64,000 nt of DNA. Source: Oopsacas minuta. Taxonomy: Eukaryota; Animalia; Porifera. The translations under genes and the position numbers were made by a program. The stretch spans positions 434,001-498,000 of the forward strand of contig JAKMXF010000210.1 in the NCBI GenBank assembly GCA_024704765.1. Reading direction: 5' to 3'. Below are positions 17,307 through 26,272 of the stretch, piece after piece. Every line of letters begins with the position of its first letter. The stretch's first letter is position 1. The notes beneath the pieces are model-generated. The model was not told the DNA's origin. It searched no databases and saw only the letters and a program-made list of their open reading frames with translations.

Positions 17307-20300
17307 ATGTATTTCAAAGTTATTTGTGCTACTCTGGTCTGCTCTACTATCGTCCTAATTGGTTTCCTAAGAGTTCATCGTAGGTCCTAATTCTAATTTG
17401 ATTTATTTTGATAAATACTTTTATGTGTGGTTAATTTGAATAGGTTGGAACTGGTTACGAATCAAAAGACCTAAAGAAGAGGCAATAGAAACTACACTAC
17501 CCATCTCTCGCACAAATACACCTCCCATAGACCAGACAGAAGAAGTGAAAGCTAAGCCGATGTTATGCCCTGGTCCCAGTACACAACATCTACAACATGA
17601 TGGAGTTGATGTGTATGTGATATCTAGCATGACAGAGTGCGAGGAAATACTCTCCAGTATTCCAAGACAGAATCTCTGTCTCTTAGGATTTGATTGTGAA
17701 TGGGCTCAGTCTTATCATTTAGATGAAATAGTACAAGCAGCACGAGGAGATTGTCTCTCAGCCTTCGTTTATCCTATAGCTTTAATTCAAATAGCAACTA
17801 TGGATTCTAGATGTTATCTTATCAGACTATCTCAGATGCAGAATCAAATTCCACCATCACTTGTGGACATCTTACTAGATGAAAAGTTAGGCAATGTGTT
17901 GAATAGATTGCTTACCCATAATTTAATTGTTGTTTTTATTTCTAGATGCCTTAAGTTTGGTGTCAGCTCTTTAAACGATTTGAATCGTATTAAGAATCAT
18001 TATCTCATACATCCAAAGGGTGCTGTCGATCTGAGACACCTTGCATACCACAGGATGATAGGGTAGGAATTAATTACATTTATTTGTACCAATAATAATT
18101 AATTAATTATGAATACAACAATTTGAGGAAAAACGGAAAAGTATACACTGGAATTTAACGATTGTCTACTTTGTAGTTTTTCCTGAATTTATCATCGAAA
18201 ATTCAAAAAAAGATTAGTAATTAATCATACTGTAATTAGATACATCTGTTGTTATCCATACTCTCTACAGAGCCCTATTATAGATTCAGTTTTATTATCT
18301 TTTGAGTATTTATTACTGAAATGAGAGCGATTATTTTCGTTATTTGTTTGTCTATTCTCGCGGCTAATTGCCAGAAGGTGGACATCCACATAGCTGGAAT
18401 CTATCCCGCAAATGGTAGTTGGTCTGCTCCTAATATTCCAATATCTGTACGCCTTGCTCTAGAACACATTAACTCAAACAATGTAGTACCTGGCTATACT
18501 CTTAGGATTGATCTTGAGAATAGTCAGTGTAAGAATACGATAGGATTAAGTAGATTATTTCATTTTATTCAGAACCCTAACTACACTTACGTATCTCTGT
18601 TTGGGGATGGTTGTTCGGTAGTTACTGGAGCTGTAGCAGAGATTAGCTATCTATACGGTCTTGTTTCTGTTGCATTTGCTTCGACCTCTCCTTCTCTTGC
18701 GAACACAGAGCGATATCCAACGCTGATACGTAGCCGACCTTCTGAATCCAGCACTATTCCAGCTAGATTGCGATTTATTACAGAGAATGGATGGAAACGA
18801 ATTGCAATAATTAATCAACAGGAAGATCTGTTCGTCTCGACTAGTCATGAGCTTCAAAAACTTCTCAATATTGATAGTGTGCACTATCGTATCGAAATCA
18901 TTGATCCTAAGGGACCAAATCTTCTAGAACAGTTACAAGGAGCATTAGCTCTCATAGAGAAAGAAGGTTATCGTATTATAGTAGCAAACATGTATCAAAC
19001 TCTAGCTGTTCAGTTGTTATGCATTATGAAATCCTCTGGTTTGCAACCTCCATTAGTGACGTGGATATTTCCAGGTTGGTATACAGATAGCTGGTACGAT
19101 AGTCCTGTACAACTTTCCAACATTACTTGTACTCCAGAAGAGATCAAACGCTTGTCTAATGGGTCTCTAGCTTTCTATGCTGGTCCGAGGTTTGTAGATT
19201 TCAATGCTGAGAATAGCACTACAATTTCTGGCTACACTGCTGAACAGCTGTTTGCCGAATACAGCGAGAGAGTTGAGAAAGAATCGAACACTTCACCTAA
19301 CCCTACCTTCATAGAAACAGCTTATGCTTACGATTCTATGTGGATGATAGCTCAGGGTCTTAGTAAGATTGCTTTAGCTTATGACCTTACTAAGCACCCG
19401 TCTGAATATGCTAATGATCTGTATAACAATATTACTTCTCTAAGTTTTATCGGATGGAGTGGAGAGATTTCTTTTGTTGGACATCAGCGAGTGGAACGCA
19501 GAGTTCAGCTTCTGGAATTTGTGAATGGAAAACTTGAGTATCGCGGCCTGTTCGATAATGTTCCTGTTCACGAATCTGATTACATACAAACTGATGATAT
19601 AACTTATAATGAAATTTATCCTTTCACTGTATGGAGTCCTGATAAAGCATCTGATGGAATTGAGATTCACTTTGTAGATATTTGGATTGTTGTTGTTGTC
19701 TTTATCTCTGCAGTCATGTCCTCAATATATGTTAGTATTGTGATTATTGTGATACTGGTTGGTATTGCTAAAAAGCTGAAGGCTGTAACCACCTCACAAC
19801 CATGGATAACAATCTTGATAACTTCTGGCAACTATTTTGTGTTCATTTTGGCAATTGTCTTTGTGATAGATGGTCGTATCTTAGGAATAGGTAGCAAAAA
19901 GAATGAACAAGCTTGCTACTTCATCTGTCATTTGAGAATCTGGCTAGGAAGTGTGTGGGTGAGTACAACTTTTGGAGGGATACTTGTAAAATCTCTCCGA
20001 TATTATATAATTGCGATAAAAAATAGGTTTGAGTATCGACGGGAATTAAGCACGAAATACATACTTATCTTCCCTCTACTACTCGTTGGTATAGATACGA
20101 TTTTCGTGTTAATCCTAAGATTAGTGCAGCCTGTCACGTTTATGGAAAGCGAAGTCTCTTCTGGTAAAATAAACCCACCTATCTATCAGATAAGTGAGTG
20201 TGGTATCGAAATGGGAAATAGCTATATCGTAATTTTGATAATTCTCGTACTGTTTAAGGTATTGTTGATGTTACTTAGCATATTAATGGCTTACAACATT

Positions 20301-23300
20301 AGGAATATTGTGAATAAGAATCAACGCTTTTCTGCCATAGTTTCATGGGTTACATATAACGGAACTGTATTTGTGATAACTGTAAGTCTAATTTATTCAT
20401 TCGTTTCTGATGTCAACATTAAGTATCCTCTATGTGCTATCGCTATTCTTGTTGGGGGGTTAATTACTGCTTCTATCATTTCTGCTCCCACGCTCCACTA
20501 CATGAGGGTTGATCCGAATTACATCGAGGGTGCGCACACTGGGGCTACGGACGCGTTTCCCGAAGATATTCAGATATTGCGTAAGAGGATTGAAGCTCTT
20601 GAGAGAGACAAGAATAATCTGGAGCACAGACTAGTGAAGAGGCTCAGTAGATCTATTCCTAACGTTATTATGGAAGATGAAATGATGCGTTCAACTGAGC
20701 TAATCTTGCAAGATTCATCCTCAATCCATTAATTTTTGAATATTTAGCATTTTCTTATATATAATTATCCATTTTTTGATTTTTCTCCATTCATTGAGAG
20801 AAATAATTAATTTTCCTTTAATATTATTTACAATTTAATATTTTTCTTAGTCAACGACTTGGTTTACAAGGATTAAGCAAACATTTTCTTGGAATTGAAT
20901 TGAATAAAGATCCACAATTACAAAGAAGTAACTGGCAGTCTCAAAACCTTACATTTCAACAGGTAGAAACTTATATACTTGGGTAGTTTTCAAATAATTT
21001 AAGTTACTTTCTTATAGATAAAGTACGCTTCAATAGATGCTAAGGTATCTCTGGATATTCTCTTCGCTATCCTCCAAATAATCTGCAAAGAACGTTCCAT
21101 TCCACAAGCAGTACAATGTCCGAGTATATCCTCAGAATTTATCGATCTGGTATTTGATATATGCGGTCCTTTAATTGATATTCCTTTTGGCGGGGGAAGT
21201 AGCAAGACTCAACAGAGACAGCGCAATAATTCTGGTAGTATTCACTCTATTAGGAGCAGAAATAGAACTAGGAATAGAATTAAATTACCTTATAATACAA
21301 ATCAGAATTTTACCCCAAACTAAAATTAACGACATGATCACTTGCAATATTATTAATATCCAATCCTTACAGATTTAGCTTGCAATCTTTCTCGTATTTG
21401 GGCTTAAATTCAATTATTTCATAAAATACGTAGTTTTCCTATCGAGTACTAGCTTGTTAGAACAATGGCCACCTCTACCAGTGCGTTATTACCATTAGAA
21501 CTGATCGACAAATGTATTGGCTCTAAGATTCACATTCTTCTAAAGAATGATAAAGAAATAGTCGGCACACTGCTCGGATTCGATGATTTTGTCAATATGG
21601 TATTGGAAGACGTGACTGAGTATGAAATGACGCCAGAGGGCAGACGGATAACTATGTTAGAGCAAATCCTGCTTAATGGTAATAGTATTACCATGATGAT
21701 ACCTGGAGGGGAAGGACCTTCTGTTCAGAGCTAGATTTCCGTTATTTTCTATTAATAAACTACATAGCTTTTCCACAGAGATTCATATTTTTTGGGTCGA
21801 GTTTAATTTAGTAATTTCTAGGAATGAGGGCAAAATTGATTTAACTGTTGAGTCACTGTTAGTTCAATTGTGACTTCAAATGTCTGATATACCTGATGCA
21901 AATGTAACTGATCTGAACTCATTTCTACTTTCACCCTTGTTATACTCCTACCAGCTGAATGACAGTATGAAAAGACGTGTTATTAAACATTTTGAGAGTA
22001 TTGAACTTCCAAATGACAAAATTGGACAGTTCCGTCTAGAATGGGAAAAATTAGCAAATACTCATTATACAAACTTGAAATCAGAATTATTGTCTGAAAT
22101 AGCGCTGAGTAAACTTGAAAGTCTAGATCCAGAATTTAATCAAGAACTTGAAAAGTTTACACAAACTGAATCTGGAGACTCAAAAGTTTCCAGAATAGAA
22201 GAGACAATTAATGAATTATGTTACAAAAATGAATTTGAGCTCAAGTCTAAACTGTTGAGTTCTTTGAAAGTTTTGAATGAGAAGTTAACCGAAAAATGCG
22301 ACCAGATTGAAGAAAGAGTTCTTAAAGAGCAACAAGCAATATCTACTCTATATGAAACAGTAAAACAAAACATGAAATAACTGTCCTTATTATCTTAAAA
22401 CAATCTCTTATATTTACAAAAAGTTCCATAAATATTGGCTAGTGATTTGTTAACATTCAATATTTGCTATTTATCAATTTATATCTGGTTTAATCTATTA
22501 GGTGTAATCACTGCAGACTCGCCTAGGGTTAAGAATATAACCACTCCATATGTAACAAGGAAAAGAGCCCTGTATGAGAATTGCCGGCTCTTGGCACCAG
22601 ACAATGAGCTCCTCTCTTTAATAGATACAAGAAAGGCTAATTGGTATTTTGAGAGAGACTTGGCTGGTGAGTTACAACTACGATAGTTATTTTATTAATT
22701 TATTAATTTCACTATTTATAGAACTTGTCAGCGAGGAACCTTATGTAGTCAGGTTAAAGTTTGAACCAAAGACTCGTCCTGAGAAGGGAAATATAGATAA
22801 GCTATACTATCAAGCTGAAAAACAGAATATTTGTGTAGTTTGTGGGTCCAAAGATGGTAACGGAATCAGGAAGAAAATCGTTCCAGCTGAATACAGGAAG
22901 TGAGTTTAATAATTTGGCTAAATTTAAAGTATATTAAATTACTTAACGGAAGATATAGCTGGACAAATATTTTGTATTTCTCTCTCAACCTTGTTAGACC
23001 ATAGCTTCAGTATTTCTGCAGGGCCATACCGCCATAGATTTATCATGAATGCTGGCTCCAGGTTTTCAACTGCATGTACCCATCCTCTGGGTAGATACAG
23101 GACTTCTCCAGGGTTCAAGGTAACTTGGATTGGATTGGCCTTTAGGAGGAGTGGGAATTTTGTTTTATCGAGTTTTTCCAATGTCTCTAACGCACTGCTC
23201 CATTCTAACGAGCCCTTAGCACTGACCATATATAAGAAAGGATGGTCTTGGGGCGAGAACAATGTCCATCTTTTCCTTCCAATCATCTGATACACGAAGT

Positions 23301-26272
23301 TATCCTTCGAGTCAAAATGTCCTTGTGTGTATGTACCAGGCATTCCCATCCAAATAGATGGAGTTAGAAAACAAGACTCAGGATTTCCGTAGAAAGGAGG
23401 ATATCCTATTAGCTCTCCAAACTCCTCTGACGTGATCAATCCCTTCTTAGCAAAGTATACGAGTTTTTCCTCTTCTCGAGCCTCTCTTTTGTTTGTTGTT
23501 ATGTCTACAAAGTCTTTTATAGACATTCTAACACGATTAATAATCTTTTTTCCTGATTTGCTTATCTCGTCTTTGTATTCTCCTTGTCTAACGTCTCCAA
23601 ACAGCATATGTCCATATTTGGAAGAGATGTATTCCCAATGCCACTTGCTTAGTACTTCCTGACTAATCATATCTGTAAAGACTACAGGCAATCCAACAGG
23701 AGCTATGTAGCTATTGAAAAGATCCGAAGAGGGAGTTTTCATACGAGCAACTTGTCTTATTCTTGGTAGTAATGAGCTAGCTCTCTGTATAGTGTCTAAG
23801 GAGTCTATACTATTATCACTCCAGCCCTTCAACTGGCTTAGATCCATGTCTTTATAAAGTAATGGTGTTTCAGATTCACTCATCTCTTCGGTAGGCATCT
23901 GTGTGGTTGGCTCGAATTTGTTGATTTCCAGAGCGTATGGGAAAGGGGACATATAAAGGTAATTCAGAATACATAGTTGGATAAGTAGAGCCACAAAGAA
24001 GAATGAGAGAATTATTACTTTCCATGTGAACGAGTTCATTACTGAGGTTTTATTATATGAATAGTAGGAATGAAGTTTGTTTGCTTGTCAGTTTAGCATT
24101 TATGGAACATTATCAACAAGCAAACTCGGACTAATAATATATTAACACAACATCAAGTAGATTTATGTGTAAAATGATAATATTCAATAACTAATAAGAA
24201 TTGATAGAAAGAGAAATCAGGCCAGTAAACCTTTTCGAAGAGAAGCAAGGAATTGCAAGCCTGCCATAATAGAAAGCTAGACAGTCTCCTCTCTCCAGAT
24301 GTTCTAATCACAAGACAAGGCTCAGGGCTAGGACTGGTGTACAGATTCTCACTTATATCTTTCTCTGATATTCTTCTCGTCGGGTTAGCTAGATGTATCT
24401 GGTTGATTGAGTTAACAATCTCTTCTGTTGACAAATAAGCTACGCATATATTGAGTGTGAATGCGTTATTCCTCTTTGAATCGTTTTGCACTCTCTCTAC
24501 GATATCTTGCAAGTCTTGAGGAAGAGTTGATATCTTTCCTATTATTTTTATCCGAGCTCCTGTCCTGATGAGAGATTCTCTATGTGATAGCATCTGCTCG
24601 AACTTCTCTCTGGCCAATTGCATTAGACCGTCAACCTCATCTTGAGGCCTGTATGTGGAGAATACATTTACACATTTAACTTACATCCATACCAGAGATG
24701 GAACCGGTTAGCTTTTTCATGACCCGACCCGACCGGCCGCTCGACCGGTCGATGGGAACTTTGACTATACACTGCCTGGCCAAAAGTATTGGAACACCCT
24801 GCCGCTTGTGATAGAGAAAAGACAATAGTGGATTTAGTAGTCAAGATTAAAATCTTCTATAAGATCTGTACTAAATTGTTTATTTATGGTCTAGTTTAAT
24901 CGAACTGCTAAGTTGAAGTTTTGGTCAATATGATTACAGTATCAAATTCAGATTTACCATATTCAGAAATTATGACCGGTACCCGACCCGACCCGACCGG
25001 TTCCATCTCTGATCTATACTACTGTTTAAATATCTACCTGTTAAAGTTTTCAAGACTGAAAGCATATACAGTTGCCTCCTTCACTCCCAGATCTCTGCAC
25101 CACCTTACCACATCGATCATCTTTTCAAATCCTGCTCTATGCCCTAGAGTGACGTCATCCAGCTTGTTCTTTCTCGCGAATCTCCTATTTCCATCCATAA
25201 TGATAGCGATATGATTCGGTATGCTTGTGCTAGGCAGGAGGTACCATAGTATGTACATGATGTACTTTTGGATTAGCTTTATAATCTTCCTGATGAACAC
25301 CCTCATGTTTATCCTGCAACCCTTTAAATTATTAGATGACCCGTTTCTGCCAACAAAATTATATCCATTTGGTTAGTCAACAACAACAGTTATTAATAAC
25401 TATTACATCTATTGTGTGTGCTATATCAAGTATCTATTTGCACCAATCTAATTATTCCACATAATTATGTAGAATTGTAGTATCCATTACTTTTAACCTC
25501 TCCCTTATATTGCATAGTAGGCTTATTTACTTTATTATAAGTTGCATAAGTTCCTCCTTCCCGGACATAATATTAGCTAGATATCCTTCTCCTTTCTTCC
25601 TATATTTTTCAGTTATTTTATATTTATTAGACATTTTCCTATTGATCACAAGAGCTACAAATCTCATGACAACTTGTTGCTTTGTGGTTCTTGCCATCTG
25701 ATAACAAGCCTCAATGAAGATATATTAAAATTACGTATCTCTAAGGAGTATGATGCACCAATTGACTCAGGAGCTTCCAAACTTAACTCTGACCCAATTT
25801 TATACAAAGTAAAGAATGCTGCTAGGTATGTCTTAATACGTATTAGCTATTTATAATTACATGACTTTAATATGGATATTATTCCTCAGGGCATTGGCAC
25901 AATCTAAAAATCCACTACCTGACGAAAGGGCAATTCAGTACAGAGAGATTCTTAAAGATTTCTACCAGGTAGAGGAATTGGATGAAGAGCAAATTCGAGA
26001 AGCTGCTAAGATCGATCCAAAGTAAGTTAATTCTGTAATTAGCTATTCAGGAATTTTGTTCTAGATTAATTGTATTATAAAATTTGTGAAGGAATGAGAA
26101 TCCAAATTACCATGGTCATGGAGAAAAGGTAGTCGAACAAGTGATGGCTAATGGAGAGTTACTTGAATTCCAGATGCGATGGAGACAACATTTTCTTGAG
26201 ACTATGAAACCAAAATTCTTACCAGAGCTTTGGTCAGCAACTCATAACCCTAATAAAGATAAATATTTCTAG
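17307..26272 (+). CDS. EXD2: EXD2 3'-5' exonuclease, 10 exons, hosting five nested genes
   Basis: Exons 17307..17379, 17444..17885, 17946..18062, 20851..20962, 21018..21234, 22502..22666, 22722..22899, 25631..25825, 25890..26021, 26092..26272 total 1812 nt (603 aa), all GT-AG with matching phases. N-terminal TM anchor, LGFDCEW, SNW...[34 protein letters not shown] and [16 protein letters not shown] are colinear with EXD2. The exon 5 donor could alternatively be an in-phase GT near 21199. Confidence 0.92.
18321..20732 (+). CDS. Class C GPCR, GABA-B receptor-like (nested in EXD2 intron 3, same strand)
   Basis: Signal peptide, Venus-flytrap domain ([36 protein letters not shown]), 7TM region and C-terminal coiled coil; single exon of 803 aa. 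Confidence 0.9.
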   Translation: MRAIIFVICLSILAANCQKVDIHIAGIYPANGSWSAPNIPISVRLALEHINSNNVVPGYTLRIDLENSQCKNTIGLSRLFHFIQNPNYTYVSLFGDGCSVVTGAVAEISYLYGLVSVAFASTSPSLANTERYPTLIRSRPSESSTIPARLRFITENGWKRIAIINQQEDLFVSTSHELQKLLNIDSVHYRIEIIDPKGPNLLEQLQGALALIEKEGYRIIVANMYQTLAVQLLCIMKSSGLQPPLVTWIFPGWYTDSWYDSPVQLSNITCTPEEIKRLSNGSLAFYAGPRFVDFNAENSTTISGYTAEQLFAEYSERVEKESNTSPNPTFIETAYAYDSMWMIAQGLSKIALAYDLTKHPSEYANDLYNNITSLSFIGWSGEISFVGHQRVERRVQLLEFVNGKLEYRGLFDNVPVHESDYIQTDDITYNEIYPFTVWSPDKASDGIEIHFVDIWIVVVVFISAVMSSIYVSIVIIVILVGIAKKLKAVTTSQPWITILITSGNYFVFILAIVFVIDGRILGIGSKKNEQACYFICHLRIWLGSVWVSTTFGGILVKSLRYYIIAIKNRFEYRRELSTKYILIFPLLLVGIDTIFVLILRLVQPVTFMESEVSSGKINPPIYQISECGIEMGNSYIVILIILVLFKVLLMLLSILMAYNIRNIVNKNQRFSAIVSWVTYNGTVFVITVSLIYSFVSDVNIKYPLCAIAILVGGLITASIISAPTLHYMRVDPNYIEGAHTGATDAFPEDIQILRKRIEALERDKNNLEHRLVKRLSRSIPNVIMEDEMMRSTELILQDSSSIH
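21465..21734 (+). CDS. LSM5: U6 snRNA-associated Sm-like protein LSm5 (nested in EXD2 intron 5, same strand)
   Basis: [47 protein letters not shown]...[18 protein letters not shown]. Confidence 0.97.
21880..22380 (+). CDS. Uncharacterised 166-aa coiled-coil protein (nested in EXD2 intron 5)
   Basis: ATG-initiated ORF with E/K/L-rich heptads; no family recognised with confidence. Confidence 0.6.
   Translation: MSDIPDANVTDLNSFLLSPLLYSYQLNDSMKRRVIKHFESIELPNDKIGQFRLEWEKLANTHYTNLKSELLSEIALSKLESLDPEFNQELEKFTQTESGDSKVSRIEETINELCYKNEFELKSKLLSSLKVLNEKLTEKCDQIEERVLKEQQAISTLYETVKQNMK
22939..24039 (-). CDS. JmjC/cupin-8 2-oxoglutarate oxygenase with N-terminal membrane anchor (nested antisense in EXD2 intron 7)
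   Basis: Metal-binding triad GHFDSKDN ... WVHAVEN; [10 protein letters not shown]; [13 protein letters not shown]; hydrophobic N-terminus. Confidence 0.88.
   Translation of the reverse strand: MNSFTWKVIILSFFFVALLIQLCILNYLYMSPFPYALEINKFEPTTQMPTEEMSESETPLLYKDMDLSQLKGWSDNSIDSLDTIQRASSLLPRIRQVARMKTPSSDLFNSYIAPVGLPVVFTDMISQEVLSKWHWEYISSKYGHMLFGDVRQGEYKDEISKSGKKIINRVRMSIKDFVDITTNKREAREEEKLVYFAKKGLITSEEFGELIGYPPFYGNPESCFLTPSIWMGMPGTYTQGHFDSKDNFVYQMIGRKRWTLFSPQDHPFLYMVSAKGSLEWSSALETLEKLDKTKFPLLLKANPIQVTLNPGEVLYLPRGWVHAVENLEPAFMINLWRYGPAEILKLWSNKVEREIQNICPAISSVK
24153..25306 (-). CDS. DHDDS: Dehydrodolichyl diphosphate synthase (cis-prenyltransferase), 2 exons (nested antisense in EXD2 intron 7)
   Basis: Exons 25306..25038 and 24648..24153 (phase 2, 254 aa). 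[48 protein letters not shown]. Confidence 0.93.
24693..25011. mobile_element. hAT-type MITE in the DHDDS intron
   Basis: Perfect 16-bp TIR CAGAGATGGAACCGGT / ACCGGTTCCATCTCTG; 8-bp TSD ATCCATAC / ATCTATAC (7 of 8 match); subterminal GACCC repeats. Confidence 0.88.
24768..24803. mobile_element. Tc1/mariner-like terminal fragment inserted inside the hAT MITE
   Basis: TA+CACTGCCTGGCCAAAAGTATTGGAACACCCTGC matches the reverse complement of 58430..58464 with 3 mismatches; no second TIR nearby. Confidence 0.7.

Follow-up and report, generated by a model that had tools for sequence, protein, structure and literature searches.

Five genes nested within three introns of a predicted EXD2 gene in the glass sponge Oopsacas minuta

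Introduction

Whole genes lying inside the introns of other genes are known to be common in glass sponges. A manually curated gene set of Aphrocallistes vastus holds 2432 nested genes (12.4%), many of them conserved, glassin for example, and long cDNA reads from the same species revealed a trans-spliced leader of ∼37 nucleotides (nt) (Francis et al. 2023, PMC10282587). That study, which offers neither strand statistics nor a mechanism for nested genes, ascribed differences between genomes to annotation method, the annotation of Oopsacas minuta containing only 83 nested genes (PMC10282587). Leader trans-splicing is known in hexactinellids and operons are unreported (PMC7986045). Here we describe a locus of O. 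minuta in which five complete genes lie within three introns of EXD2, an exonuclease gene of DNA repair. It falls in a stretch of 64,000 nt (the window; assembly GCA_024704765.1, contig JAKMXF010000210.1, positions 434,001 to 498,000 of the forward strand), and all coordinates below count from the first base of that window. Like the nested genes of A. vastus, these sit in a compact genome of mostly single-exon genes, with whole genes in introns; the locus differs from what was reported there in the crowding of a single host, three of whose introns hold five guests, and in being misannotated (PMC10282587). It is thus a well-resolved set of nested genes from a glass sponge that trans-splices leaders, and most likely an ordinary, though unusually crowded, nested-gene locus. 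Genes that receive a leader have an acceptor near the ATG, a pattern that an enrichment of TAG before gene starts in the window fits; the difference from the leader trans-splicing described in hexactinellids (PMC7986045; PMC10282587) is that the acceptors of the EXD2 guests are candidates read from the sequence.

Three systems outside the sponges offer further comparison. The SL2 operons of C. elegans and the operons of Ciona and Oikopleura likewise have same-strand genes 100 to 150 nt apart, the downstream ATG being closely preceded by an acceptor, but these operons do not lie in introns of a spliced host, and polycistronic RNA has been demonstrated there, whereas the EXD2 locus is read from DNA. 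In the cholinergic locus, the VAChT gene lies in the first intron of ChAT, on the same strand, and shares a 5′ exon with it. That locus resembles ours in having an intronic guest on the same strand, with an expression that can hinge, via splicing, on the promoter of the host; at EXD2, in contrast, the guests sit in internal introns behind long coding sequence, where the guest ATG would be buried in an mRNA with shared exons. In Drosophila and mammals, nested genes on the host strand have their own promoters and poly(A) sites in host introns, the host reads through them, and transcriptional interference is possible (PMC5174743, PMC3192792); unlike glass sponges, these animals lack leader trans-splicing and have long introns, whereas at EXD2 normal introns measure ∼55 to 70 nt and those of 1.3 to 2.8 kb are exceptional. 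The locus is a clean, dense example for a question that the glass-sponge genome papers leave open, namely, how a host whose normal introns are ∼55 nt is spliced across 1.3 to 2.8 kb containing same-strand genes, dozens of acceptor-like sites, and 3′-end signals.

An EXD2 gene with five genes in its introns

The host gene spreads over 9 kb, and the exons and long introns that we assign to it are as follows.

17307-26272, + strand: EXD2 host gene, 10 exons, with five complete genes within three introns
17307..17379, + strand: exon 1, with the ATG and an N-terminal hydrophobic helix; identical to KAI6655158.1 residues 1-25
17444..17885, + strand: exon 2, start of the 3′-5′ exonuclease domain with the GFDCEW motif (tblastn)
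17946..18062, + strand: exon 3, donor GT at 18063
18063..20850, + strand: intron 3, 2788 nt, holds the receptor gene; acceptor TTCTTAG ending at 20850
20851..20962, + strand: exon 4 (tblastn)
21018..21234, + strand: exon 5, with the YASIDA motif and, in agreement with the public model, a donor at 21235
21235..22501, + strand: intron 5, 1267 nt, holds LSM5 and a 166-residue open reading frame; junction also in the public model
22502..22666, + strand: exon 6 (tblastn)
22722..22899, + strand: exon 7, first half of an HNH-like motif, CVVCG
22900..25630, + strand: intron 7, 2731 nt, holds two antisense genes
25631..25825, + strand: exon 8, second half of the HNH-like motif
25890..26021, + strand: exon 9 (tblastn)
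26092..26272, + strand: exon 10, conserved C-terminus, stop TAG at 26270-26272; acceptor AAG

Homology was tested exon by exon. Exons 2 and 3, read through the short stop-free intron between them, were searched against a representative protein library, and four full-length EXD2 orthologues among the matches (P0012, P0029, P0033, and P0038) were then compared with the window by tblastn. All four gave the same colinear series of plus-strand matches, from 17611 to 26269.

17611-18042; 20861-20968; 21018-21239; 22549-22665, + strand: first four tblastn matches of the four orthologues
22721-22900; 25629-25835; 25888-26031; 26090-26269, + strand: last four tblastn matches of the four orthologues

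Neighbouring matches abut in the orthologue (residues 213/212, 366/367, and 422/422, for example), all ten exons are open, their phases agree, and the introns are bounded by GT..AG. The product carries DEDDy-type exonuclease motifs, followed by a CxxC...H...CxxCH region and the conserved C-terminus, colinear with the orthologues, and the HNH-like motif is intact, with the 2.7-kb intron 7 separating its first half, in exon 7, from its second, in exon 8. Single exons fall below Pfam thresholds, being too short; exon 2 alone finds EXD2 (6k17) and the WRN exonuclease as its best PDB matches, weakly (E=0.27 for one exon), and is 63% identical to an open reading frame of another glass sponge. Taken as a whole, EXD2 reads as one intact 10-exon gene.

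Five complete genes occupy the three long introns, three of them co-oriented with the host, as the sequence-only reading had it, and two on the opposite strand.

18321..20732, + strand: guest 1, intronless class C (GABA-B-like) G-protein-coupled receptor (GPCR) gene, 803 amino acids (aa)
21465..21734, + strand: guest 2, intronless LSM5 gene, 89 aa
21880..22380, + strand: guest 3, an open reading frame of 166 aa (ORF166)
22939..24039, - strand: antisense guest, JmjC/Cupin_8 gene, 366 aa; Pfam Cupin_8 at 8e-34
24153..25306, - strand: antisense guest, cis-prenyltransferase (DHDDS-like) gene, two exons; Pfam Prenyltransf at 7e-39 and 4e-20

By tblastn, the guests at 18321-20732, 21465-22380, and 22939-25306 lie wholly between EXD2 exons, and the orthologue residues that flank the three guest-bearing gaps are 164/178, 288/328, and 422/422. 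Within the two tandem pairs the spacers are 146 nt (LSM5 to ORF166) and 113 nt (prenyltransferase to JmjC).

The guests are conserved. The GPCR has the two domains of class C receptors (Pfam ANF_receptor at 4e-41 and 7tm_3 at 1.5e-15), carries the public name GABA type B receptor, and has 72 to 74% identical counterparts as single open reading frames in two other glass-sponge assemblies. LSM5 matches Pfam LSM at 5e-20 and proteins named U6 snRNA-associated Sm-like protein LSm5 at 74 to 89% identity, with 91 to 98% identical reading frames in seven ENA assemblies. ORF166, helical or coiled-coil by its look, has no Pfam family and no ESM Atlas neighbour; three homologues, each also of 166 aa and 61 to 64% identical, occur in three other glass-sponge assemblies, and it thus appears to be a conserved gene, so far restricted to the glass-sponge lineage. 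ORF166 and LSM5 share a contig in two other glass-sponge assemblies. Homologues of LSM5 and ORF166 have in common the length of their longest contig (1,051,070), as do those of the GPCR, LSM5, and ORF166 (458,075) and those of EXD2 exon 2 and LSM5 (1,105,760), and in each of these cases what is shown is linkage, not nesting. A scan of metagenome contigs with the GPCR as query gave no match.

Acceptor-like motifs before start codons

Host splice-site features were taken by hand from the nine EXD2 introns, automatic intron discovery being too noisy. One of them is TTAAY, a candidate branch-site motif, which lies with its second A 9 to 30 nt upstream of seven of the nine EXD2 acceptors, compared with 9.1% of all YAGs in the window (binomial p ∼2e-6).

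17443, 17945, 20850, 22501, 22721, 25889, 26091, + strand: EXD2 acceptors bearing TTAAY (motif scan)

The acceptor of intron 9 (26022-26091) ends in AAG (tgtgaAG) instead of YAG; since it is the only acceptor that fits the orthologue alignment, non-YAG acceptors would be used in this genome.

Each of the three co-oriented guests was said to have an acceptor-like AG shortly before its ATG, at 14, 4, and 17 nt, and all three are there.

18300..18306, + strand: TTTTGAG, ending 14 nt before the GPCR ATG; GAG, not YAG
21454..21460, + strand: TTGTTAG, ending 4 nt upstream of the LSM5 start, with another TAG ending 12 nt upstream
21856..21862, + strand: CTGTTAG, ending 17 nt before the ORF166 ATG, with TTTAAC 19 nt upstream

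The nearest YAGs to the GPCR start are CAGs ending ∼31 and ∼50 nt upstream of it. Because a YAG stands in the 25 nt upstream of 54% of the ATGs in the window, and a TAG in those upstream of 33%, the three guest AGs are individually unremarkable and, taken singly, no more than chance. Introns 3, 5, and 7 contain 83, 41, and 85 YAGs on the host strand, of which 30, 13, and 37 have pyrimidine-rich surroundings similar to those of the host acceptors. Across the window, on the other hand, the motif is clearly enriched at genes: of 27 gene starts, 20 have a TAG in the preceding 25 nt, compared with 33% of all ATGs (p=1.7e-5), the flanks of start codons contain 28 TAGs against 8 to 17 for permutations of the word, and these upstream TAGs are not limited to the reading frame of the ATG. 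TTAAY, too, precedes 10 of the 28 ATG-proximal acceptors, that of ORF166 among them, and not those of LSM5 or the GPCR. The antisense guests share the pattern, their CAGs ending 2 nt upstream of the JmjC start and 7 nt upstream of that of the prenyltransferase gene, and so do genes that are not nested, EXD2 itself having a CAG that ends 10 nt before its own ATG. The acceptor-like motif is thus a property of genes in this genome and not of the same-strand guests, and its presence at non-nested and antisense genes means that it is no pointer to processing from a host transcript. The proposal of a special processing route for same-strand guests, be it an intron operon or an EXD2 assembled by exon-to-exon trans-splicing, is accordingly unsupported, the motif being equally present at non-nested and antisense genes and the spacing of the guests being ordinary. 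As possible sites for a leader, there are TAGs before LSM5 and ORF166 and only a GAG before the GPCR, in a window where the motif is general, antisense guests included; the leader trans-splicing published for hexactinellids and the window-wide enrichment of TAG together make leader addition to the guests plausible.

Transcription and processing of the nested genes

We think it probable that the guests are independent transcription units that receive a spliced leader, with the host cis-spliced across them. The EXD2 pre-mRNA would be transcribed through all five guests and joined from exon to exon across them, and each guest would be transcribed from its own promoter in the ∼230 to 260 nt between host exon and guest, with only a spacer of 113 to 146 nt available to the downstream member of a tandem pair. 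The guests, like most genes of the genome, would then acquire the hexactinellid spliced leader at a TAG or CAG a few bases before the ATG, and we infer that host transcription bypasses the 3′-end signals of the guests.

Several observations argue for this reading. The antisense guests cannot derive from the host transcript and must therefore have promoters inside intron 7, so that intronic promoters function at this locus. From the host donor to the first guest ATG there are 258 nt in intron 3 (GPCR) and 230 or 266 nt in intron 5 (LSM5; exon 5 has an alternative in-phase donor at 21199), distances that match the spacers from stop to ATG between ordinary neighbouring genes of the window (244, 258, 235, and 251 nt) and thereby favour independent guest transcription units; neighbours that are not nested lie 128 to 258 nt apart, and LSM5 and ORF166 146 nt. 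Under the outron rule established in C. elegans, cis-splicing and not trans-splicing takes place at an acceptor that is preceded by a donor in its own RNA, and trans-splicing at the first guest of an intron is thus more compatible with a transcript begun inside that intron than with the host pre-mRNA. Cis-joining of host exons to the guest acceptors would put the guest ATG out of frame, which again favours independent units. On the host side, the junction 21234^22502 is used in a public 1007-aa model. A loop-out of the guests by pairing of the long-intron ends was considered and rejected, as RNAduplex paired the 5′ with the 3′ flanks no better than shuffles (z = -0.5, +0.4, and +0.6).

The 3′ ends bear less on the matter than had been thought. 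The sequence-only reading had pointed to an AATAAA after LSM5 and had argued that a host transcript must ignore such poly(A) signals; the hexamer is present.

21754..21759, + strand: AATAAA, beginning 20 nt after the LSM5 stop

The argument built on it is weakened, since AATAAA is barely enriched after genes: it occurs within 100 nt past the stop in only 4 of 28, compared with 8.4% of random 100-nt windows, and it is found within that distance neither after the GPCR nor after ORF166. The 3′-end signal of the sponge is probably something other than AATAAA, and a search for another motif by k-mer enrichment past the stops of the window returned only AT- or T-rich words.

Some points weigh against independent guest units. 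No promoter motif could be recognised by k-mer enrichment upstream of genes, where an excess of TATA-like words may simply reflect AT-rich noncoding DNA. The spacers of 146 and 113 nt leave little room for a 3′ end and a promoter, and the genes of each pair could therefore be co-transcribed. The ORF166 acceptor has all the features of host acceptors (pyrimidine-rich context, TAG, and TTAAY ∼19 nt upstream), so that its competition with host splicing would be real. Finally, the promoters, the leader junctions, and the host junctions are all ones that we infer.

Alternative explanations

The alternative that survives best, unlikely though we hold it to be, is that the tandem pairs alone are co-transcribed, LSM5 with ORF166 and, on the minus strand, prenyltransferase with JmjC, each pair from its own intronic promoter, with the downstream gene resolved by leader trans-splicing and the host uninvolved. 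The very short spacers would suit such an arrangement, as would the acceptors before the downstream genes (a TAG 17 nt before ORF166, with TTAAY, and a CAG 2 nt before JmjC), and two further assemblies also have LSM5 and ORF166 on one contig. Against this, 128 to 260 nt is the norm for all same-strand neighbours in the window, so that short spacing is unspecific, and an AATAAA stands between the members of the first pair, after LSM5.

More doubtful still is the idea that the host pre-mRNA, or its excised introns, serves as a polycistronic precursor from which the same-strand guests are freed by leader trans-splicing and 3′ cleavage, the intron acting as an operon. Each host transcript would then give either EXD2 mRNA or guest mRNAs, not both. 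Leader trans-splicing does exist in the lineage (PMC10282587, PMC7986045), acceptor-like TAGs lie 4 to 17 nt before LSM5 and ORF166, and the spacer between these two genes is operon-sized. The acceptor motif, however, is found equally at non-nested and antisense genes, the antisense guests prove that promoters work within introns, and operons are unreported in hexactinellids (PMC7986045). In addition, a host donor lies upstream of the first same-strand guests, a situation in which the outron rule favours cis-splicing. We know of no description of such an intron operon in any animal; leader trans-splicing and nesting have each been published, and the maturation of guests from a host transcript would be an unreported combination of the two. 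We accordingly see little chance that a glass-sponge host pre-mRNA doubles as a polycistronic precursor, with host and guest expression as mutually exclusive outcomes of one transcript.

It is very improbable that the guests share the host promoter in the manner of the cholinergic locus, host 5′ exons being cis-spliced onto guest acceptors as alternative terminal exons. In favour of this, host donors precede the guest acceptors on one strand, and the pyrimidine contexts of the guest AGs resemble those of the host's own acceptors. Joining exon 3 or 5 to these acceptors, however, leaves the guest ATG in another frame, after 200 to 290 host codons, and a guest in that position would be poorly translated; and the public fusion of GPCR and EXD2 uses different, weak splice sites and looks like an artefact of the gene predictor.

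That EXD2 is not one gene, the exons being fission products or decaying pieces between other genes, as the public annotation implies (its models break off at long introns, the first and the third, one after 211 aa and the 1007-aa model at the end of exon 7, and reading through exon 5 meets a stop at 21321), is hardly credible, given ten open exons of consistent phase with GT..AG bounds that are colinear with the orthologues, exons 4, 6, and 8 without start codons, an HNH-like motif divided between exons 7 and 8, an exon 2 conserved at 63% in another glass sponge, and a Braker/Augustus pipeline (PMC10280926) that gave only 83 nested genes compared with the 2432 curated in A. vastus (PMC10282587).

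Public annotation of the locus

With EXD2 read as a single gene, the public O. minuta annotation, made with Braker/Augustus and RNA-seq hints (PMC10280926), is wrong from 17307 to 22899, where EXD2 is split and partly fused to the GPCR and where LSM5 and ORF166 are omitted. KAI6655158.1 (“hypothetical protein LOD99_2447,” O. minuta, 211 aa) is 99% identical to the product of 17307-18063 and corresponds to EXD2 exons 1 to 3 only, ending at a stop reached by reading through the donor of intron 3. The public 1007-aa “GABA type B receptor” joins the GPCR, which lacks its last residues there, to a portion of EXD2 exon 4 and to exons 5 to 7, and has an intron where LSM5 and ORF166 lie. Exact O. minuta proteins for LSM5, ORF166, the GPCR, and JmjC were absent from the protein collection searched, which also had no O. 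minuta protein of transcript origin for the first three. Such misannotation can swell the list of “missing core genes” claimed for this genome, LSM5 being a core factor of splicing and decay.

Further features of the window

The window is AT-rich (GC 32-41%), with many long single-exon open reading frames and ordinary introns of ∼55 to 70 nt; Rfam and tRNA scans of it gave no match. Spliced-leader RNA genes, sought de novo in the 61-Mb genome, were not found. The small nuclear RNA (snRNA) genes U2, U4, and U5 have a common upstream motif with the core AACCA[TAC]A ∼50 to 61 nt before the start, together with a TATA-like element ∼22 to 33 nt before it, and the U1 gene has only a looser version of the motif (AGACCCTTA); the motif is too short for scanning 61 Mb. 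A pattern combining a donor with an Sm site had 56 matches in the genome, of which the recurrent ones are short introns of repeated genes and not leader genes. One such false candidate for a leader RNA is a dispersed multicopy gene, with at least 20 copies among the pattern matches on many contigs and a conserved 66-nt intron (GGTAAGTAATCTAG...CAATTTTAG), which is probably a transposable-element gene.

A further level of nesting is present in intron 7, where the prenyltransferase gene, itself within the EXD2 intron, carries an element in its own intron.

24693..25011, unstranded: element of 319 nt with perfect 16-nt terminal inverted repeats, resembling a miniature inverted-repeat transposable element (MITE), in the prenyltransferase intron

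The element contains internal GACCCGACCCGACCGG direct repeats, and because dozens of genomic sites match it in full or in part (76 matching pieces), it looks like a MITE.

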